Part shown: positions 1,689 to 14,088 of the stretch, in pieces
How positions within the stretch are numbered: the stretch's first letter is position 1
How the letters are laid out: the number at the start of each line of letters is the position of its first letter
Sequence record: NC_062582.1
DNA length: 64,000 nt
Direction: 5' to 3' (one strand)
Notes under the pieces: generated by a model
Told to the model about the DNA's origin: nothing
Database searches by the model: none
Seen by the model: the letters and a program-made list of their open reading frames with translations, nothing else
Position numbers and translations under genes: made by a program

Positions 1689-3221
1689 TTAGTTAGCCCA
1701 TGCATCATCATCGTCACCACCCAGGTTAGTACCCGGCAGAACTTTGAGAGCATAGTCTTCTTCTTTGTCGATGTCCCATGGGATTACACCAACAGTGGAG
1801 AATGGTAGCAAGCAGTACATATCGTCGTTGTGAGGATTGTTACGGTGCTTACCGCGTTGAATAGCCAGATAGGCTTTGCCTTTAACTCGGATAATGTGGT
1901 GGAACAATTCCAAGTCTGGTTCTTGACCTAGTCGTTTACAACCATCATAGTAACCACGGTTAGCTACAACCTTAACAAAGTCTTCAGTGTTCTCACGCAT
2001 CAGCATCAATGCATCGGAACCCAACTGGTGCGGAGACAAGAATGTAATACCACGCGGTGCTGTGTAGTTACGCATCCGACGGAATAGAAGACGAATATCA
2101 TCACCGGCTACTTTTGCATCCAAACCTGTTTTAGGAAGCATGTTCAAATAGTCAACGGACAAGTATTGTAGTTCAAACCCTTGTGATTGCAAACCATCCA
2201 AGTAGTTAACAAAACCGCCAATGGTAAATTCTGTAGGGTCAAAGCGAATCATCTTAACTTTAAAGCCGTTCTCTTCAAGTCGTCCACAGACATAAGCTGC
2301 TGCTTCTTTCTTGTTGATATCGGCTGTTACAACTTCTTCACCTGTTTCGTTTTCACGGATGTATTTGTAGATAGTCAAAAGGTTATCTGTGATTTCGTTC
2401 TCAAGTGTTACGAACAGAATCAAAGGCTTCTTAGACTTATCTCGCATGTGTGGTTTGTTGAACAGACATACGTGAACAAAAACAAACATAGCAAAGAATG
2501 ATTTAAAGTTGTGTTGCAATGCTGCTGTAGTAATGAACTCACCACGACGCAAAGCGCCCAATGTACCCAGTACACGGTTCAAACCTTTCCAACCCAATCG
2601 GAATGCACCTTCTGCACTCAAACTGGTTTGCACGGCTTCAAACATCTCTTCAACCATGTCTGGACTATCAAAGTCAATACAACCCATTTCAGCAGGGTGG
2701 CGTGCTTCTGCACGAGCTTTAACCAAAGGATCTAACTTTACACCCATCTCGTTAATGATAGCTGCAACGTCTTGGTTGCCCGGACCACTAAAGAAAATCT
2801 TCTGGGAATATTCCCGCATAATCTGTTTGATACCAACATCACCCAGATAACTATTCAGTGTTGCACGACGACTATTAATAGAACGCATAATAGACATCCC
2901 ATCCGGGAACATCTCATTAACGCCTTCAGATACCGCATCGTATAGGTAAGATTCCTCACGGCAACTTACACGTACATCCTGCAAGACTTCCGACATACTA
3001 GGAAAGTCATTCGCAGATTTCTTATTAAGTGCTACAACAAGGTTACGTAATTCAAGGAATGTTTGTCGCCCTTGGTCATGATCTGCTGTCGTTTCTTTTA
3101 CTTCAAGTGTCCCGATAATCTTCTCAACCAACTCCGATGAAGGAGATGCTGGAGAATCAGGACGGTGTTCTAAGCACAATAGAGTAATACATTGTACCAG
3201 GAGTTGCTTTGGAGCCGCCAT
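1689..3221 (-). CDS. dnaB: DnaB-like replicative helicase (phiKZ gp118-like)
   Basis: RRGEFITTAALQHNFKS (variant Walker A), LFVTLEN, SVDYLNM, LSPHQL and RGKHR motifs; adjacent to MCP as in phiKZ. Confidence 0.85.
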   Translation of the reverse strand: MAAPKQLLVQCITLLCLEHRPDSPASPSSELVEKIIGTLEVKETTADHDQGRQTFLELRNLVVALNKKSANDFPSMSEVLQDVRVSCREESYLYDAVSEGVNEMFPDGMSIMRSINSRRATLNSYLGDVGIKQIMREYSQKIFFSGPGNQDVAAIINEMGVKLDPLVKARAEARHPAEMGCIDFDSPDMVEEMFEAVQTSLSAEGAFRLGWKGLNRVLGTLGALRRGEFITTAALQHNFKSFFAMFVFVHVCLFNKPHMRDKSKKPLILFVTLENEITDNLLTIYKYIRENETGEEVVTADINKKEAAAYVCGRLEENGFKVKMIRFDPTEFTIGGFVNYLDGLQSQGFELQYLSVDYLNMLPKTGLDAKVAGDDIRLLFRRMRNYTAPRGITFLSPHQLGSDALMLMRENTEDFVKVVANRGYYDGCKRLGQEPDLELFHHIIRVKGKAYLAIQRGKHRNNPHNDDMYCLLPFSTVGVIPWDIDKEEDYALKVLPGTNLGGDDDDAWAN

Positions 3222-3893: not shown

Positions 3894-3968
3894 ATCCGGT
3901 AAAAATAGATACGTGAAGAATTCAGTTATTGTTACATCAAAAAATCCATCCTACGTAGGAAATAAAAA

Positions 3969-6197
3969 ATGTCTTATTTGAAATCGCTGTTGAAAGCTAA
4001 TGCTGATCAAGCTCCAACTACCTTCTCTATGGAGAACTTCCTGGGTCTTCTGGCCGAAGGTCAAGATCTGAGTGGTAGTGTATTTAACGCAGCTCATGGT
4101 CTGACCAAGTCTGTTGGCCTGGAATCCTTTGGTGATGCCAAGCACGAAGAAACCGTTACCATTAGTGCTATGTACAAGAACCTGCAAGGTCTGTTGACTC
4201 GTTCGGGTTTCGAATCGTTCCTGAGTGAAAACAGCCGTGTAGCTGAGAACCAAATCGTTGCTGCTACTACCGCTGCCATCGCTGCTGAAAACCCTAAAGA
4301 GTACATCAAGGCTCTGCGTAACCTGACCAAGGCTCTGCCATCGACCGAAAGCATCCGTACCGTTGAACAATCGTTCGCTGGTCCACACGGTTCGCTGCAA
4401 GTATTCCAAGGTGATGCCGCTAAGAACATCGGCCTGGAAAACTACAACGAGAAATCGCAGCGTGACTTCCGTGTTGTTACCGTTGGTTATAACCTGGCTG
4501 CTAGCCGTCAGGATGAGTTCGCTGAACGTATCTACCCAACTACCGTAATCAACCCGATTGAAGGTGGTGTTGTTCAAGTTCTTCCTTACATCGCTGTACT
4601 GAAAGACGTTCATCACTCGGTTACTGGTGCCCTGTGGGATACCAAAGAAGTAAACATGGTTGAAGCATACCGTGACCCATCCATCCTGGATGATAACGCT
4701 ACCGACCTGATCCCAGCTATCGCTCCTGGTGGCGAGAACCTGAAATACTTCGTAGACCCAGCTCTGATCGCTCCTGAGACTGTAGTTAACGAACAAAACA
4801 TGTCGATCGAAACTGCCCCACTGAAACCAGGTATCAAAGTTGACCTGATGGGTATCTCGAACGCCAACTTGCTGATCAACGCTAACATGCTCGACGTGTC
4901 TGACACCATCGACCCTGCTGGCCGTCTGAAAGCTCTGTACGTTAAATTCGAAGGCGAAGTAATCCGCTTTAAAGTTGACCGCATGCCACGCGCTGTGTTC
5001 CAACCTGACCTGATCGGTGATACCCGTGGTGCTAAGGTTGACTTCTGGACTGACGACCTGTCGGTTTCGGCAATCACCCGTACTATCGGTGGCGCTGCTA
5101 CTTCTGTTATCACTGAACTCGAAACCCGTAAATGGGTACTGCGTATCAGCGTTCAATTCTCCGGCGTTGTTAGCCTGAGCAAAGGCGAATCCCGCTTCAC
5201 CGTTGGTGAGTGCTCGGTTGCTCGCATCCTGAACGAAGATCGTCGTGATATCGATATCACTGCTGGTCCTGGTGCTGCTTTGGTAGCTAAACTGGCTGAT
5301 CTGGAAATCATCGGTTTCGACCTTGATTGCCGCTTCACCAACACCAACCGTCGTCAGCGTGGTCACCTGCTGCAAACTCGTGCCCTGCAATTCCGTCACC
5401 CTATCCCAATGCACGCGCCAGTAACCCTGCCGTTGAGCACCATGGATGAAGAAGGTCCAGGCGAAGTTGTTAAAGCACTGACTGTTAACACCAACATCCG
5501 TAACAGCAACAACGCTGTTAAGACCCTGCTGAACTACCTGGCACAACTGCGTGAACTGACTGGTAGCGGTTTCAACCGTCCATCGATCAACGTTTACGAA
5601 GGTGCTCTGGCTTCGGTAATGCGTCCTACCTACGTTTACGGTAATCTGCACCTGCCAGACGTAATCGATACCCTGAAGTCGAAAGACCGTTGGGACGACG
5701 TTTGCTCGGCGATCCTGAACTACGTCAAAGGTCAACTGTTCCCTGCATACCGGAACTCTAACATTGAAGCTGCTTTCCGTGTTATCTCTGGTAACCAAGA
5801 CGAACGTCCAATCTTCCTGTTCTGCTCGGACAAAGAGATTGCTAACTACCTGATGACCAAAGGCGATGACCGTACCCTGGGTGCTTACCTGGAATACGAT
5901 ATCGTATCGACCAACAACGAACTGTTTGACGGTAAGCTGGTAGTAGTACCGACCCGTAAGAACCCAACCGAGAACGACATCCTGTCCTTCGGTCAGTTCT
6001 TCTACGTATCGACTATCGTAGCCGACCTGCCAATCAGCCGTGGCGGTAACCAGATCACTCGCGAAATCGCAGCGATCCCATTCAACCTGCACATCAACAA
6101 CATTCCTTTCGCTCTGGAATTCGACATCTCCGGCTTCGCCGACGTGATGGGTACTTCTCAGTGGAACAAGCCGTTGATTGACGCTGTTAAGGCTTGA
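3969..6197 (+). CDS. Major capsid protein precursor (phiKZ gp120-like)
   Basis: 742 aa; strongly biased codon usage; SME/GLE/GLE cleavage-type sites in the first 160 aa; size and gene order match phiKZ MCP. Confidence 0.9.
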   Translation: MSYLKSLLKANADQAPTTFSMENFLGLLAEGQDLSGSVFNAAHGLTKSVGLESFGDAKHEETVTISAMYKNLQGLLTRSGFESFLSENSRVAENQIVAATTAAIAAENPKEYIKALRNLTKALPSTESIRTVEQSFAGPHGSLQVFQGDAAKNIGLENYNEKSQRDFRVVTVGYNLAASRQDEFAERIYPTTVINPIEGGVVQVLPYIAVLKDVHHSVTGALWDTKEVNMVEAYRDPSILDDNATDLIPAIAPGGENLKYFVDPALIAPETVVNEQNMSIETAPLKPGIKVDLMGISNANLLINANMLDVSDTIDPAGRLKALYVKFEGEVIRFKVDRMPRAVFQPDLIGDTRGAKVDFWTDDLSVSAITRTIGGAATSVITELETRKWVLRISVQFSGVVSLSKGESRFTVGECSVARILNEDRRDIDITAGPGAALVAKLADLEIIGFDLDCRFTNTNRRQRGHLLQTRALQFRHPIPMHAPVTLPLSTMDEEGPGEVVKALTVNTNIRNSNNAVKTLLNYLAQLRELTGSGFNRPSINVYEGALASVMRPTYVYGNLHLPDVIDTLKSKDRWDDVCSAILNYVKGQLFPAYRNSNIEAAFRVISGNQDERPIFLFCSDKEIANYLMTKGDDRTLGAYLEYDIVSTNNELFDGKLVVVPTRKNPTENDILSFGQFFYVSTIVADLPISRGGNQITREIAAIPFNLHINNIPFALEFDISGFADVMGTSQWNKPLIDAVKA

Positions 6198-7851: not shown

Positions 7852-9477
7852 ATGGCAGATAGTTATCTGATGGGTAAAATCCGAGAACGTACTGAACCTT
7901 TCAATATGTCCTTGGCTAACGGCATTGCGCATGAACAGTTAATGGCGGTAAGTGACGCCGGTAAATCTGCACGGGAAGCTGCGGTTGATCAGATGTTTGC
8001 AATCAACTCTGCAATGTTTCCAGAAGGTTTCAAATATCATGGTTGTCACATCAGTCGACCTGAGAAACACTTTGAAGAGATTACACGAGAGTATAGTAGT
8101 AAGCGTATCGCGAACATCGCTAAAAACACCAACACCATGTTTACATTGAAGACCAGCTTCAAAGGTGAACCTTGTTTCGATCGCCACATTCTTATTCCAT
8201 ATCTCCTGCAAGGTTCCACCAGCTTTATTAACGGAGCTTGTTATAACTATTCGCCAGTTCTAGCTGACGTTGGTTATTCCGTATTGAGTAACAGTATCTT
8301 CATTCCGTTTGCACGTGCGAAGCTGACCTTTAAACAAAACGATCATCATTACAAATGTAATGGCGAACGAAAGATCATGCACGTGATCTGGTCTCAGGTT
8401 CACAACGAAATGAGCAAGCGTAACAAACGTGACTTGGATAATCGTCAACAGATTGAGTCTTGTCTAGCACATTACTTCTTCTGTGAGTTTGGTGTAACCG
8501 ATACATTCAAGCAGTGGGCTAACGCGGATATTAAGATCGGGAAGAAGTCTGAGTTCCCTGAATCGGAATACCCACGTGATCAATGGAACATCTACGAGTC
8601 TGCATATTTGGTAGGTACTCACCCAACTGGTGAAATCGTACTGGCAATGCTCAAGGAACAAGAGACAGACTTCGCCAAACGTCTTGTGGCGGGTTTCTTC
8701 TATGTAGTCGATACTTTCCCTGGTCGGTTCGTTGAACCGTCTTATATGGACAATAAGCGTGTCTGGCGCGTATTGCTTGGTTTGATGGTGTTCGGTGACT
8801 TTGAGCACATCGGTAAGATTACCGAGAACATTGATAACCACATGGAAAGTTTTAATAACTATCTTGATGAAATGACAATCAAGAACCTAAGTCGGGTTGA
8901 TGTAAAAGTCAGAACGATCTGGGAACTGTTGTATTGCATCATGACGCAACTCTCTCATCACCTGTATGACACAGACATCGATGAGACCAGTATGTACCAC
9001 AAACAGTTCTCTGTGATGCGGTATGTAATGGATGATCTTAACCGAGCTGTTACAATGTTTGCCTTTGGTTTTCAATCCCGAAAAGATAAGGAATGGACCA
9101 AGAAGGATATTGATGACGCGCTCAAACGACAATTCAAACTAAACACGTGTATGCGTAAGATGAACGTAGAACACGGTGAAGTTGATATTGTCAGTTATCC
9201 TGGTGATAACAAAGCAATCAAATTGACAAGCATGGTTGTTCCACAAGACCGTGCACGTTCTAGTAAGTCCCGTAACAAATCCATCATTGGCGACTCCAGT
9301 CGGTTGATTCACGTTTCTCTGTCTGAAGTATGTCAATATAAGAATCAACCAAAGAACAACCCAGACGGTCGTGGCCGTGTGAGTCTCTGGTGTGATATCG
9401 ATTATGACGGGATGGTAAAACGTAATCAGGAAGATAAACCCTTCCTCGACGAAGTTCAAAAGAAATTCAAACGTTAA
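7852..9477 (+). CDS. Non-virion RNA polymerase beta-like subunit, N-terminal part (phiKZ gp123-like)
   Basis: About 541 aa; IPYL, YSPVLAD and NNPDGRGR motifs; size and position as in phiKZ. Confidence 0.8.
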   Translation: MADSYLMGKIRERTEPFNMSLANGIAHEQLMAVSDAGKSAREAAVDQMFAINSAMFPEGFKYHGCHISRPEKHFEEITREYSSKRIANIAKNTNTMFTLKTSFKGEPCFDRHILIPYLLQGSTSFINGACYNYSPVLADVGYSVLSNSIFIPFARAKLTFKQNDHHYKCNGERKIMHVIWSQVHNEMSKRNKRDLDNRQQIESCLAHYFFCEFGVTDTFKQWANADIKIGKKSEFPESEYPRDQWNIYESAYLVGTHPTGEIVLAMLKEQETDFAKRLVAGFFYVVDTFPGRFVEPSYMDNKRVWRVLLGLMVFGDFEHIGKITENIDNHMESFNNYLDEMTIKNLSRVDVKVRTIWELLYCIMTQLSHHLYDTDIDETSMYHKQFSVMRYVMDDLNRAVTMFAFGFQSRKDKEWTKKDIDDALKRQFKLNTCMRKMNVEHGEVDIVSYPGDNKAIKLTSMVVPQDRARSSKSRNKSIIGDSSRLIHVSLSEVCQYKNQPKNNPDGRGRVSLWCDIDYDGMVKRNQEDKPFLDEVQKKFKR

Positions 9478-9493
9478 CTAAATAGGTATCAAA

Positions 9494-11587
9494 ATGTTCA
9501 ACTCGCAACTGCCAGTTCCTTTTAACCAATTGGATCAGTCTACCTTTAATGGTAATCTGCCAAACGGGAATGACAAGGTCCCTCAGATCCAGCTCTCCCA
9601 GCAAATGATGCAGAACCAACAGATCGCTCTGCAAGCAATTGGTTACTTCCGAGCTATCGCGCAGTCGACTGCACAGAAGACCCCATTGCATGTGTTCTGT
9701 TATAACCTGTTGTCTCAGAATGGTTTCCAGAACCAAGTGTGGGCGCAATGGTGTCAGCACCTTGTAGTCTTCACCGAACTGTTGATCATGGCCAAGGGTT
9801 ATAACACCCAAGACGCAATCAAGATGGCATGTACTCGTTTGTATGAGGCATTCCTGTCGGGTGCATTCAAAGAGTATCATCAAGCTGGCCTGAACCAAGT
9901 TGTTCCACAACAAATGTGGCCTAGCTTGGAACAGGGCGTGATGCTGTATCAACAAATCCTGGCTGATAACCAAAAGTATATCCAAGGTGGCGTTGCAGCT
10001 TTCCAACAGCAACAACAGTTCAGTGGCTTTGGTGGAGGCGGTAGCTTCAATAACAACAGCTTCGCCGTAAACAACAGTGGTAGTGGTAACCTGCCACGTA
10101 TTAATGCCGGTGCGGTTACTAGTACCTTTGGACAACCACAACGCGGTACTGGTGGTATGCCTTTGTCTAACAGCTACGAAGCCACTCAAACAACTGCTGC
10201 GGACGGTGGTCTGTATGACGAACCAATCGTAGCCAAACCACTTCAACCGGTAGAGGAAATCAGTTCTGATATTTATTCCCAATACCCGGATACAAACGAG
10301 TATATCCCAATGAACAATAACGGTACTGCACCAACCAGTAACAACAACTTCACTCAGGTGAATACCGCAGCTTCGTTTGAAGATACCGAACTGCATATCC
10401 CACTGAACGTTGAAGAAGTTATTATCGATCCGCTGTATTATCAGCCAACCGGTTTCCAATTCAACAGCGAAGATCCTTATGGTTTGATCTTCAACCCTGG
10501 TGGTATCGAGATCCGTCCGGCACATCAATCGAACTGGGATGTAACTCCAGGCGATGACATGCCTTATCTGATCGCTATCGATCCAAACCAACTGGTGATG
10601 TTCCATGTTAAATTCCCAGATGGAACCGTCAAAGAAAAAGCTATTGAATGGAATGCCGATATGGATTACATGCGTCATGAACTGAATACCGAACTGCGTC
10701 GTCGTGCACAGCGTCCGAACGGTATTGTTGTAGAAACAAAGATCCCTGTTAGTAGTCTGGGTAAAGATCCACAGACTGAAGACGAGATCAAGATGTTGCA
10801 AGAACAAGCTGGTCTGAAAGGTAACGTAGAAGGTCCTGTGATCCTCTCTGCGCCGTTCAATGGTTCTACTGACATGGAAATCCGTGCGGCAGTTAGCGAA
10901 GCTATGTCTTCGTTGCTGGGCGTGGAATTCAATGCTGAGAACCCAATGCCTCCATGCGAGTATGTATCTATCGCAACGCATTATCTGAACCTGACCGAAG
11001 AAGAGTTCCAGACCATCAAGGATCTGTCTGAGTGTGGCGATATCCCACGTGTTGCAACAGATCTGTATGAACTGGGTCAACATGGTTTCGATACCAGCTA
11101 CTACCGTTTCCTGAATTCTCGTCTGACCAAATCGATCAACCGTTTCATGCGTGAGAACATGTCTCTGACTATTGAGATTGATGACTTCGTATCTGAAGCT
11201 GTTGAACTGATGGATTATTTGGCCGTCAAGAAAGGTGAACGTTATCTGAACATCCTGCGTGCTGGTTCTCAAGAGATCCTGCGTAAGGCTATTTCGGTAG
11301 AGCAAACCGACGGTGGTACCTGTGTCATCGACTACAACGTAAACTTCCAACTGGGTTGGTACCTGGATGAACTGACTGCTCTGGGTATCCATAGTGGTAA
11401 GCCTGTTCTGGTATCCACTACATCTCACCCAGTAATCCTGGAAACCCTGCGTGGTATGATCAAGCGTGCTGGTGCGGAGAATATCAATTCTCGTAACCTG
11501 CGTCTGATTACTGCCGATGGTGCAGTGTTGGAACTGATCCGCGGTTATCTTGTTGACAAGGCCATGTTGCTGAAACTGGTTAAGTAA
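9494..11587 (+). CDS. Conserved hypothetical protein with a Q/N/G-rich low-complexity linker
   Basis: 697-aa ORF with highly biased codons, directly after the RNAP subunit. Confidence 0.75.
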   Translation: MFNSQLPVPFNQLDQSTFNGNLPNGNDKVPQIQLSQQMMQNQQIALQAIGYFRAIAQSTAQKTPLHVFCYNLLSQNGFQNQVWAQWCQHLVVFTELLIMAKGYNTQDAIKMACTRLYEAFLSGAFKEYHQAGLNQVVPQQMWPSLEQGVMLYQQILADNQKYIQGGVAAFQQQQQFSGFGGGGSFNNNSFAVNNSGSGNLPRINAGAVTSTFGQPQRGTGGMPLSNSYEATQTTAADGGLYDEPIVAKPLQPVEEISSDIYSQYPDTNEYIPMNNNGTAPTSNNNFTQVNTAASFEDTELHIPLNVEEVIIDPLYYQPTGFQFNSEDPYGLIFNPGGIEIRPAHQSNWDVTPGDDMPYLIAIDPNQLVMFHVKFPDGTVKEKAIEWNADMDYMRHELNTELRRRAQRPNGIVVETKIPVSSLGKDPQTEDEIKMLQEQAGLKGNVEGPVILSAPFNGSTDMEIRAAVSEAMSSLLGVEFNAENPMPPCEYVSIATHYLNLTEEEFQTIKDLSECGDIPRVATDLYELGQHGFDTSYYRFLNSRLTKSINRFMRENMSLTIEIDDFVSEAVELMDYLAVKKGERYLNILRAGSQEILRKAISVEQTDGGTCVIDYNVNFQLGWYLDELTALGIHSGKPVLVSTTSHPVILETLRGMIKRAGAENINSRNLRLITADGAVLELIRGYLVDKAMLLKLVK

Positions 11588-11625
11588 ACGACATAAAGCC
11601 CCTACCTTCGGGTAGGGGTTTATAT
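11588..11625. terminator. Hairpin; 26-nt core identical to 14041-14066
   Basis: ATAAAGCCCCTACC-TTCG-GGTAGGGG at 11593-11618. Confidence 0.8.
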
Positions 11626-11641
11626 CAACTAGGGGAAATGA

Positions 11642-12061
11642 ATGAAACTCGATCGCCTATTTGCAATGATCAACCGTATTGAAATCTTTCAGGATACTGG
11701 GTATTATTCAGGCAACCCTACCCATGGATTTACACCAGATCACCAATACTTCACAATTGATCTAAAGAACATTGATGATAAACAGGCATACATAATGAAC
11801 AACATTAAGATTGCTCTGTTTGTTAACTACCGTAAATCACGAGTAGAAGCCAAAGTGGGAAAACCTGATTATATATTGTTTACTGATAACCGTCTAGGCG
11901 AGTTACTAGAGCAAGAAGAAAAGGTTATGGGGTCGTATCTCAAGTACGATGTTGAGAAGCGTGAAGAACCTTATTTTACCAATACCGTTTTGGTGGTTCC
12001 CGTACTCCCCGATAAGCCTGAAGTTGAAATCCCCAACGTATTAGAGTTTGGTATTAAATAA
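11642..12061 (+). CDS. Free-standing paralogue of the MCP C-terminal region
   Basis: Hand alignment to MCP aa ~553-675 in this window, e.g. YIMNNIKIALFVNYRKSRVEA vs AILNYVKGQLFPAYRNSNIEA and MGSYLKYD vs LGAYLEYD. Confidence 0.8.
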   Translation: MKLDRLFAMINRIEIFQDTGYYSGNPTHGFTPDHQYFTIDLKNIDDKQAYIMNNIKIALFVNYRKSRVEAKVGKPDYILFTDNRLGELLEQEEKVMGSYLKYDVEKREEPYFTNTVLVVPVLPDKPEVEIPNVLEFGIK

Positions 12062-12071
12062 GGAAGTATGT

Positions 12072-12485
12072 ATGCTCATCCCAGTCAATAAAGTAACCGA
12101 TAATCTTTATCGTTTTACAATTGATTTGAATCTAACTCCAGAAGGCTTCGAAAATAACCTGGAACATTCTAACTGGCGCCGTCTATTGTTAACCGGTAAT
12201 AGTTATGCCGAGCTAGGTTGCCCAACAGTGGATGATCATATTGATCCACGTATTGCTTTAATGCGATTGCGACAAATTTATCCTGAACGTACCTGTGGTC
12301 ATATTAGTGTGAGTGGTAATGATAAGGATCGTATGTATTGCGATCTTAAACCACATGGCCCGCACGCACATATTTTGAAATACCTTGATTCCATCCGAAA
12401 GCTGTTCGTCTCGCCACGTCTTATCTTTAATGAAGATAGCGAGATTGTAAATATCATTACCTTCGATGTAGTAGAAGTAAATTAA
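12072..12485 (+). CDS. Prohead-protease-like protein (phiKZ gp175/T4 gp21 fold), probably inactive
   Basis: YAELGCP, RLRQI-TCGHI, KPHGP, VSPR and TFDVVE follow the remembered protease motifs in order; His of ELGHP appears as Cys; ATG 12072 has an AAGGA RBS. Confidence 0.6.
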   Translation: MLIPVNKVTDNLYRFTIDLNLTPEGFENNLEHSNWRRLLLTGNSYAELGCPTVDDHIDPRIALMRLRQIYPERTCGHISVSGNDKDRMYCDLKPHGPHAHILKYLDSIRKLFVSPRLIFNEDSEIVNIITFDVVEVN

Positions 12486-12509
12486 CCACTATATCACTAG
12501 TTGGATATT
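12485..12509 (+). promoter_or_regulatory. Early-type promoter variant (TATATCAC)
   Basis: ACCACTATATCACTAGTTGGATATT; 23/25-nt copy at 61420-61444. Confidence 0.6.
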
Positions 12510-12540
12510 CTAACCCAAACTGGTAAAGAGGAACTTCCAA

Positions 12541-13269
12541 ATGATGGCAATTCAAAACCTGCTGCAAAAGACTGGCGTTGCTAAACTCCTGCATCGCGAG
12601 CAGTATCCTGAAATCGAATTTGATTTCAGTAATAGTGATCTCGTAGAGGCTGATGACTTCTACGATGTACCCACTAAACGTGAACTTCCAATTAAAGGTA
12701 AGTCTAACCTGACTTACCGTACCCTGGACGACATGTCTCTGTGGACGTGGAAACGTAATGCGTACGTAGAACATAACCCGTATGCTTTCGGTATCACTCA
12801 ACAATACAACACTGTTACTCCAGAGCAGTTCGAACAGACTGTTATAGCAGCAACTGACGAATCTCACAATCGTTTGGTTCTGGAAGATCCTCGTCATCTT
12901 CCGTCGATCAGTATTGACGAAGTTCGTGATGGCGCTGATCCACGTATGGCGATGCTGTACAACCTGCTGGCATTGCGCGAAGACCTGCGTACGATCAATG
13001 ACCTGAAGATTCCATTCGCCTCTATGGTCAAAGGGAATCTTCCTACGCCGTATCTGCGTAACAGTGCTAAGCAGAACGTATTGGATAACTGGTTCTTCCA
13101 GAGCCATACTGCCTTTAGTCTGTTGTTGCGTAGCGCATGTAAAAGTGAAAAGTCTGTTATCCAGAACTCGATCGCAGACGTACTGTTCACGAAGGGTGCA
13201 CATCTGCACTGGAACAAAGAACGCGGTAACGCTGTATTCAAAGACGGTGAGTTCGAGGTGAATCTGTAA
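12541..13269 (+). CDS. Hypothetical protein, 242 aa
   Basis: GAGGA RBS, biased codons; family not recognised. Confidence 0.7.
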   Translation: MMAIQNLLQKTGVAKLLHREQYPEIEFDFSNSDLVEADDFYDVPTKRELPIKGKSNLTYRTLDDMSLWTWKRNAYVEHNPYAFGITQQYNTVTPEQFEQTVIAATDESHNRLVLEDPRHLPSISIDEVRDGADPRMAMLYNLLALREDLRTINDLKIPFASMVKGNLPTPYLRNSAKQNVLDNWFFQSHTAFSLLLRSACKSEKSVIQNSIADVLFTKGAHLHWNKERGNAVFKDGEFEVNL

Positions 13270-13484
13270 TGCCTTACAAGCATAACGGCGTGTACCTAAA
13301 CAAAGCTGGGTACGATCCCTTTATAATCGTGCGTGATTATCATGCAGGTTTTGAAGCCTTGCGTATGCAGTTGCAAAAGCATACTGGTGATTGCCCTATT
13401 GATCATGGGGAACGCACCAACAAGAAACTTAAAGACCAACCCTACCACATGCGTGGTCCTAACGGTAAAATGAGGAAGTGGTGA
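13269..13484 (+). CDS. Small basic protein A with a GERTN-K-KDQP motif
   Basis: TAATG coupling to the upstream gene; C-terminal 25 aa paralogous to the next ORF. Confidence 0.7.
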   Translation: MPYKHNGVYLNKAGYDPFIIVRDYHAGFEALRMQLQKHTGDCPIDHGERTNKKLKDQPYHMRGPNGKMRKW

Positions 13485-13684
13485 TGTTCGGACTATCGAA
13501 TATGTTTAACTTTAACCCACCCGAATCCACAGGTAAAGAAAAGCTGGAAGAACTCTGTGGTATTCACTGGGGTTCCTCTTACAAAGGCGAAATGAAAAAC
13601 GATAAGGGCGAACGCACTAATCGTAAAATTAAAGACCAGCCGTTCTATCATCGTCGTAATGACGGTAAAATGAAAAACTACTAA
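13484..13684 (+). CDS. Small basic protein B with a GERTN-K-KDQP motif
   Basis: TGATG coupling, GAGGA RBS; paralogue of the previous ORF. Confidence 0.7.
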   Translation: MFGLSNMFNFNPPESTGKEKLEELCGIHWGSSYKGEMKNDKGERTNRKIKDQPFYHRRNDGKMKNY

Positions 13685-14035: not shown

Positions 14036-14088
14036 GCGGTATAAAGCCCCTACCTTCGGGTAGGGGCACTATGCCTTATTTTTTTTTA
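14036..14088. terminator. Bidirectional terminator between convergent genes
   Basis: gcccctacc-TTCG-ggtagggg plus T-run. Confidence 0.8.

Follow-up and report, generated by a model that had tools for sequence, protein, structure and literature searches.

gp192 of Pseudomonas phage Phabio is a probable diverged, free-standing copy of the major capsid protein A domain

The gp192 locus and its similarity to the major capsid protein

The stretch of DNA analyzed here, a window of 64,000 nucleotides (nt), comes from Pseudomonas phage Phabio (NC_062582 / MF042360), where it spans bases 124001-188000. Phabio is a jumbo phage of the phiKZ-like, nucleus-forming kind with a genome of 309 kb, and its host is P. 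fluorescens SBW25. Our subject is gp192, a gene whose product is annotated as 'hypothetical protein' in the Phabio record. It is located in the head-gene neighborhood, 5.4 kb downstream of the gene encoding the major capsid protein (MCP), gp187, and in the same orientation (Table 1). The MCP matches the Pfam model PhiKZ_MCP at 6e-223 and the solved phiKZ gp120 structure (8Y6V) with 1032 bits. The gp192 gene starts with ATG, a Shine-Dalgarno-like GGGGA lies 6-10 nt before this codon, and its frame is the sole open one among the six frames at the locus, the other five being closed.

An earlier reading of the nucleotide sequence alone (hereafter the original prediction) had described the gene as an intact open reading frame (ORF) with its own ribosome-binding site and had matched its product to the MCP in blocks amounting to roughly 30 identities over about 115 positions. 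The frame and the site were found as described, and the blocks were recovered by Smith-Waterman alignment, which pairs gp192 residues 21-137 with MCP residues 542-675 at a score of 106; shuffled sequences (n=2000) scored 34.4 +/- 4.9 (z=14.5, Gumbel p about 5e-9). The pairwise and profile comparisons that the original prediction had proposed as a check also support homology to the MCP: BLASTP aligned gp192 with the Phabio MCP at 29/103 identities (E=1e-9) and, over a longer stretch, with the 201phi2-1 MCP at 37/136 identities (E=4e-10), and hhalign against 24 diverse MCPs gave a probability of 96.6% (E=6.2e-10). When a hidden Markov model (HMM) of those 24 MCPs was run against 2483 six-frame ORFs of the Phabio genome, only the MCP, gp274 (described below), and gp192 (E=6.5e-8) were retrieved, the next ORF having an E-value of 0.62. 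As negative controls, other small genes that occupy the same genomic slot in relatives were compared with the MCP, and their hhalign probabilities were 3%, 0.3%, and 0.1%. Searches of Pfam, PHROGs, and the PDB, as well as tblastn with gp192, returned a phiKZ-type MCP as the sole or top match, always over the same C-terminal region. The Pfam match (PhiKZ_MCP, PF25620) covers profile positions 482-583 of 635 with 19.6 bits (E=2.8e-4), which is below the gathering cut-off of 27, and gp192 therefore fails the threshold of this family.

Table 1. Features of the analyzed window (positions counted from its first base)
Feature	Position	Strand	Remarks
gp185, helicase gene	1689-3221		510 aa (amino acids), uninterrupted
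ORF opposite the MCP gene	3951-6092	-	713 aa, unannotated in the record
gp187, MCP gene	3969-6197	+	742 aa
MCP residues 542-675	5592-5993	+	A-domain segment matched by gp192, from the alignments and the phiKZ gp120 domain boundaries (PMC11297242)
ORF opposite gp191	9467-11428	-	653 aa, unannotated in the record
GC-rich terminator-type hairpin	11595-11621	+	AAAGCCCCTACC-TTCG-GGTAGGGGTTT; closes the gp191 transcription unit; position conserved in all relatives
Leader	11622-11641	+	contains the Shine-Dalgarno-like GGGGA; the homologous leader of L026 directly precedes the gp193 homologue, and gp192 is inserted downstream of it
gp192	11642-12061	+	139 aa; probable free-standing, diverged MCP paralogue, A (axial) domain only; residues ~21-137 match MCP 542-675
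10-nt spacer	12062-12071	+	GGAAGTATGT, with the ribosome-binding site AGGAAG for gp193; part of the inserted cassette
gp193	12072-12485	+	truncated, probably non-catalytic prohead protease paralogue; co-oriented, 10 nt downstream of gp192
gp195	13269-13484		small paralogue of gp196
gp196	13484-13684		small paralogue of gp195
Second hairpin copy	14043-14069	+	near-identical; end of the co-oriented gp192-gp197 block

Domain map and divergence of gp192

In the cryo-EM structure of the phiKZ capsid, the A (axial) domain of gp120 comprises residues 540-679 plus 718-727, the P domain residues 485-539 plus 680-717, and the I (insertion) domain residues 248-472 (PMC11297242). Numbering of the Phabio MCP runs about 5-6 residues below that of gp120, and with this offset the stretch aligned with gp192 maps onto the main contiguous segment of the A domain. 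A possible extension to the very start of the domain is given by the motif INRIEI, which pairs with FNRPSI of the MCP (residues 10-15 with MCP 535-540 in MAFFT). We also considered a circular permutation in which gp192 residues 7-18 would represent the last A-domain strand (MCP 714-725); its sole support was a 10.8-bit BLAST fragment, and it is not claimed here.

The propeptide, N-arm, I domain, P domain, and C-arm are all absent from gp192, so that a protein of 139 aa stands against the 742 aa and full architecture of the MCP, and within the A domain two MCP loops (565-574 and 604-611) are deleted. In an alignment of 75 MCPs, 45 columns are conserved at 95% or more; of these positions, 13 are retained in gp192, 28 are changed, and 4 are deleted. 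With 32 near-invariant positions changed or deleted, gp192 is therefore not a faithful capsomer subunit and is clearly free of the constraints acting on a subunit of the shell. It is 25-32% identical to every MCP A domain of the clade, though those domains share 75-91% identity. On the tree, its branch is saturated at about 10 substitutions per site (median for MCPs, 0.06), and an origin from a Phabio-clade MCP was neither rejected nor supported by the approximately unbiased (AU) test (p=0.58). By architecture, Pfam threshold, and invariant residues, gp192 falls outside the MCP family proper, yet it is clearly homologous to one MCP domain.

The original prediction had assigned the protein to what is probably the HK97 A-domain region. 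At the sequence level this assignment is upheld by the domain map, whereas structure prediction did not substantiate it: AlphaFold2 (AF2) models had a predicted local distance difference test score (pLDDT) of 32 when built without a multiple sequence alignment (MSA), and a pLDDT of 46.6 and a predicted template modeling score (pTM) of 0.42 when built with a shallow MSA of 21 rows of MCP A-domain segments. Foldseek searches with these low-confidence models gave no match at E<5 in the PDB and only gp192's own entry in BFVD. We infer the A-domain fold of gp192 from the alignments.

Selection and recombination at gp192

Two variants found in assemblies of public reads are more than 90% identical to gp192, with 6 (L029) and 2 (L030) amino acid changes; both retain the order gp192-gp193-gp194, and the gp192 frame is intact in all three variants. 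The ratio of non-synonymous to synonymous substitution rates (dN/dS, Nei-Gojobori) is 0.15-0.20 for the three variants. Between Phabio and L029, 10 synonymous and 6 non-synonymous substitutions were counted, where neutrality would give about 1:3.7 (binomial p=4e-4), and the dN/dS comparison suggested in the original prediction thus indicates purifying rather than neutral evolution. The view expressed there that the gene is not a recent broken duplicate agrees with these values, with a GC content of 38% (51% in the MCP gene), and with the saturated branch. Small as they are, the substitution counts argue against a decaying relic. Taken together, these comparisons make it very probable that gp192 is a protein-coding gene under purifying selection and that it descends from the A domain of a phiKZ-type, HK97-fold MCP.

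The segment has also been subject to exchange. The Phabio and L029 sequences agree at 96-100% of nucleotides in gp192 and its leader, compared with 85-95% in other neighbors, and the synonymous rate (dS) of gp192 is 4x below that of the flanking genes (Fisher p<1e-7), indicating recent recombinational exchange or spread of the segment. The same pair of sequences is mosaic in gp193, the body of which (12086-12434) is 70-85% identical (dS about 1.0, dN/dS 0.10), whereas the flanks (11595-12085 and 12435-12554) are 96-100% identical; this looks like the replacement of a gp193 allele by recombination.

gp192 is an insertion in a hypervariable slot

gp192 lies in a hypervariable slot between the homologues of phiKZ gp124 and gp125. 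In phiKZ and Noxifer this slot contains no gene; in 201phi2-1, HPP-Temi, and Psa21 it is occupied by various small genes. Five genus-level metagenomic relatives (L026, L028, L032, L033, and L034), whose MCPs are 77-91% identical to that of Phabio, lack gp192; in four of them the slot contains a gp193 homologue alone, and in L033 two extra, unrelated small ORFs stand upstream of this homologue. Comparison of the junctions revealed a terminator hairpin after gp191, the phiKZ gp124 homologue, in all relatives. In L026, the same hairpin and leader lead directly into the gp193 homologue, which begins MIVPV... (MLIPV... in gp193), and the gp192 coding sequence together with the 10-nt spacer and its new ribosome-binding site (11642-12071) is therefore a clean one-gene insertion. 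Since all of these relatives assemble capsids without gp192, the gene is not needed for capsid building.

Beyond its own cluster, no free-standing gp192 homologue was found among 5.8 billion protein clusters, nor did an exhaustive phmmer search of 1.84 billion representatives yield a true one. The only non-self phmmer match, P0002, is an S-layer-type protein whose 96-aa tandem repeat gave weak matches that added up to an artefact, and short A-domain-like proteins from a profile search proved to be merely MCP fragments at contig ends (e.g., P0116, which starts at contig base 4). At 17 other MCP loci inspected with 10-kb flanks, no second A-domain copy was detected. 201phi2-1 gp205 and Psa21 gp175/gp176 were considered as cryptic MCP fragments and rejected on negative hhalign results, which likewise did not uphold a weak BLAST match of gp205 to MCP 512-568. 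gp192 is present only in Phabio and the two close metagenomic variants, L029 and L030, and this is the accessory distribution, within a variable region, that is looked for in an anti-defense decoy or inhibitor.

The hairpin element has features of its own. Its two copies in the window (AAAGCCCCTACCTTCGGGTAGGGG) bracket the gp192-gp197 block, the Phabio record contains 4 places that match it, and both Logan contigs that carry gp192 break exactly at it. A 32-nt stretch with the hairpin is 100% identical in PhiPA3-like phages that otherwise have no nucleotide similarity to the query. A promoter scan of the region revealed neither a recognizable phiKZ-type promoter motif nor a recurring early-type motif; a sigma-70 scan has no bearing on phiKZ-type RNA polymerases, and nothing can be learned from the 4-nt late motif TATG.

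Neighboring genes

Directly downstream of gp192 is gp193 (phrog_7478; weak Pfam S80 match), whose family is the most regular occupant of the slot. This family, which includes 201phi2-1 gp206 and PhiPA3 gp143, has been described as a diverged prohead protease paralogue without the C-terminal prohead-targeting part (Ali et al. 2017, PMC5694885), and tblastn with the true 201phi2-1 protease, gp268, detects gp193 (E=0.002). We used the spacing of the published SPN3US gp245 triad as an analogy to place the presumed catalytic His/Ser positions in an alignment with gp268; Phabio has C/S at these positions, L026 Q/Q, L028 P/A, and gp206 E/K, and only the Asp is invariant. Because the His/Ser pair is not conserved, gp193 is probably a pseudo-protease. 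In addition to the true protease, gp258 (L036:416-1243), the Phabio genome encodes three truncated paralogues, gp193, gp341, and gp342 (the latter two at L040:32765-33537). Neither of the 201phi2-1 slot genes, gp205 and gp206, carries a virion mass spectrometry flag in the RefSeq notes.

Several observations concern the wider neighborhood. Within the gp192-gp197 block, the adjacent gp195 and gp196 are small paralogues with a common C-terminal motif (ERTNKKLKDQPYHMRGPNGKMRKW vs ERTNRKIKDQPFYHRRNDGKMKNY). The Phabio helicase gene gp185 is uninterrupted, whereas at L026 5909-9250 a 472-aa ORF that faintly matches NUMOD1, probably a homing-endonuclease or intron-type insertion, divides a DnaB-like helicase gene into two divDNAB pieces (115 aa and 389 aa). 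Near the helicase gene of L033 (5950-6882) is a gene for a 310-aa Kelch/beta-propeller repeat protein, which is absent from this position in Phabio. The long antisense ORFs opposite the MCP gene and gp191 are most likely shadow ORFs that arise from codon bias. Several clear phiKZ-type MCP homologues from JGI metagenome records (P0031, P0033, P0038, and P0040) are misnamed 'virulence-associated protein VapD' at the source.

gp274 is a second free-standing piece of the MCP

The other ORF retrieved by the MCP HMM, gp274, lies outside the window (L036:22664-23611; NC_062582 210664-211611), encodes 315 aa, and is labeled 'major head protein' in RefSeq. Its residues 92-315 align with MCP 230-458, a stretch made up of the I-domain linker and the I domain; RFTN marks the exact end of the alignment (hhalign 99.5%, E=4e-22; MCP HMM, 7e-31). 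In the phage collection, gp274, like gp192, matches only itself and full-length MCPs. Diverged syntenic orthologues of gp274 are Viktualia CDS0496 (L043:33143-34264; 1.8e-9 against the MCP HMM and 1.2e-8 against gp274) and 201phi2-1 gp282 (L044:2491-3711; hhalign 95%, E=4e-8), the latter without a mass spectrometry flag. phiKZ gp185 occupies the syntenic position and has no MCP similarity, and functional data from phiKZ are therefore not transferable to gp274.

The gp274 family resembles gp192 in that its members are free-standing copies of a single MCP domain, about 20-30% identical to it and found in the same phage clade; it differs in the domain copied (the I domain), in its locus, and in its extra N-terminal sequence, and the two have no mutual similarity. 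Conserved synteny across at least three genera indicates that the gp274 family is the older of the two. When the MCP was searched by tblastn against 50,697 phage records, 261 records matched at only 265 places, and extra MCP-like pieces detectable at this level are therefore very rare; a second MCP-like place occurs in the two Phabio records, in Viktualia, and in one more record. Counting gp192, gp274, and the protease paralogues, three kinds of head-assembly module are present in Phabio as disabled or partial copies.

What gp192 may do

The mechanism that we favor, tentatively, is an immune decoy. Capsid proteins have become known as major triggers of bacterial immune responses, and for several sensors the A-domain face is the specific binding site: Avs7, Avs8, and Avs10 are each reported to bind the capsomer-forming face of the MCP A domain (bioRxiv 10.64898/2026.01.04.697583), and MCP and prohead protease trigger CapRel, Thoeris, and CBASS (PMC13728456). 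We further infer that, when a nucleus-forming phage infects a cell, few of its components other than the capsid proteins are exposed in the cytoplasm. In the decoy mechanism, gp192 would be made as a soluble, cytoplasmic look-alike of the A domain. Its partner, most likely a host immune receptor of the protein-sensing type, would be one that normally recognizes new MCP by its capsomer-forming face, and by binding this partner gp192 would blunt or delay the activation of immunity during capsid assembly, which takes place in the cytoplasm outside the phage nucleus. The accessory-gene signature of gp192 and the binding of Avs7/8/10 to the A-domain face make such a decoy plausible. That gp192 is indeed a soluble A-domain mimic, that its partner is a host immune sensor, and that its role is anti-defense are together a possibility to which we give less than even weight.

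Several of the results weigh against it. The loss of 32 of the 45 conserved MCP positions and of two loops means that the surface recognized by a sensor, or by the MCP itself, may be gone, and a fragment that does bind could just as easily switch a sensor on as block it. The AF2 models are of low confidence (pLDDT 32 and 47) and brought no usable Foldseek match, PADLOC and NCBIfam scans gave no match to a defense or anti-defense family, and the selection test consists of only 16 substitutions in one pairwise comparison. Moreover, gp192 is paired with two gp193 alleles that are 85% identical at the aa level, and a tight co-function of gp192 and gp193 is therefore not indicated.

A wider form of the decoy mechanism would take in gp193, gp341, gp342, and the I-domain-like gp274, which may likewise mimic other immune triggers. 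Phabio, and to a lesser extent its relatives, would then carry a set of 'trigger mimics', soluble copies, disabled in catalysis or in structure, of the head proteins recognized by bacterial immune sensors, which would jam or titrate defenses of the Avs7/8/10, CapRel, Thoeris, and CBASS types. We regard this extension as rather speculative, less likely than the decoy role of gp192 by itself; if true, it would define a new class of anti-defense suited to nucleus-forming phages, whose DNA is shielded while their capsid proteins are exposed in the cytoplasm.

Four other explanations were weighed. The one that survives best, although we still consider it somewhat unlikely, is that the A-domain scaffold has been re-used for a function unrelated to the capsid, so that the similarity to the MCP is only historical. 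The extreme divergence of gp192 (branch length about 10 against a median of 0.06 substitutions per site; 32 of 45 conserved positions changed or deleted), the purifying selection that acts now in spite of it, and the lack of any detectable constraint in common with shell-forming MCPs are all as this explanation would have it; on the other hand, mimics of several head-assembly proteins (A domain, I domain, and three protease paralogues) co-occur in this one genome, which suggests a capsid theme.

A modulator of Phabio's own head assembly is, in our view, a little more doubtful still. Here gp192 would cap unassembled MCP through A-A contacts or bind the protease, the scaffold or inner body, or gp193, and, as a capping chaperone or a timer, it would keep premature or aberrant capsomers in check. 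Its derivation from the domain at the center of the capsomer, its place among head genes, and its apparent co-transcription with the protease paralogue gp193 fit such a role, as does the tendency of giant phages to diversify head-protein paralogues (PMC5694885), and the synteny of the gp274/CDS0496/gp282 family across genera would suit a morphogenetic function. Against this, relatives with MCPs 88-91% identical to that of Phabio do without gp192, which is hence dispensable, most invariant MCP residues are changed in it, and its low GC content, mosaicism, and presence or absence among relatives form an accessory rather than a morphogenetic pattern.

Distinctly improbable is a poison that co-assembles into, and spoils, the capsomers of related jumbo phages co-infecting the cell while sparing the Phabio MCP. 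There is a precedent in Ccm of SaPIbov5, an MCP homologue that redirects the assembly of another element (PMC8569155), interference among co-infecting phiKZ-like phages is documented (PMC11620839), and the accessory-gene signature would fit. However, self and non-self would be hard to tell apart among clade A domains that are 75-91% identical, gp192 has lost most of the conserved interface candidates, and it is without the N-arm, P domain, and I domain, which make most of the inter-subunit contacts. Least likely of all is a non-functional relic, a decaying piece of an old MCP duplication or horizontal transfer left open by chance: an orphan without homologues outside one species-level cluster and with a Pfam score below the gathering threshold might suggest it, but three variants have kept the frame intact, with synonymous and non-synonymous substitutions at 10:6 in place of about 1:3.7 (p=4e-4), the gene sits closely between its neighbors and is preceded by a ribosome-binding site of its own, and the other five frames are closed.

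A stand-alone A domain encoded by a phage and kept by selection is a natural experiment that could uncover a decoy aimed at protein-sensing immunity or a new layer of control in the assembly of giant capsids, and since gp192 and gp274 are small, clonable, and from a phage whose laboratory host is harmless, these hypotheses are directly testable.

Comparison with known systems

gp192 is real and unusual, yet it is known from one lineage. In a literature search, neither a stand-alone HK97 A domain nor a decoy copied from a phage's own capsid domain turned up, and gp192 shows that single domains of the HK97 fold can be excised and kept as independent genes.

Known anti-defense decoys and sponges resemble gp192 in being small, accessory, patchily distributed phage proteins from variable regions; those described bind an immune component. 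T4 gp24, the vertex protein, is a paralogue of the MCP gp23 (PMC5694885) and thus, like gp192, a second MCP-derived gene in a large myovirus. However, T4 gp24 has the full length of an HK97-fold protein, belongs to the virion, and forms its pentameric vertices, whereas gp192 cannot form a shell subunit. Ccm of SaPIbov5 (PMC8569155) is likewise a diverged MCP homologue that does something other than build its own normal capsid; it is complete, encoded by a satellite, and co-assembles into shells, whereas gp192 is one domain, is encoded in Phabio itself, and lacks the N-arm, the E-loop/I domain, and the P domain on which a Ccm-type action would depend.

The closest described phenomenon is that of the truncated prohead protease paralogues of giant phages (SPN3US gp117, 201phi2-1 gp206, and PhiPA3 gp143; PMC5694885), which, like gp192, are diverged, shortened copies of a head protein that stand beside the functional gene. 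In Phabio, the full-length MCP gene gp187 is in the same window as its diverged short copy, which is under selection as far as small counts can tell, and the same pattern holds for the protease gp258 and its short copies gp193, gp341, and gp342; a member of the protease-paralogue family, gp193, even shares the slot with gp192. The two cases differ in that the protease paralogues are C-terminally shortened and widespread, whereas gp192 is a single domain excised from the MCP and confined to one species-level lineage. Together, gp192, the I-domain copy, and the protease paralogues suggest that giant phages systematically spin off disabled copies of their head-assembly proteins.

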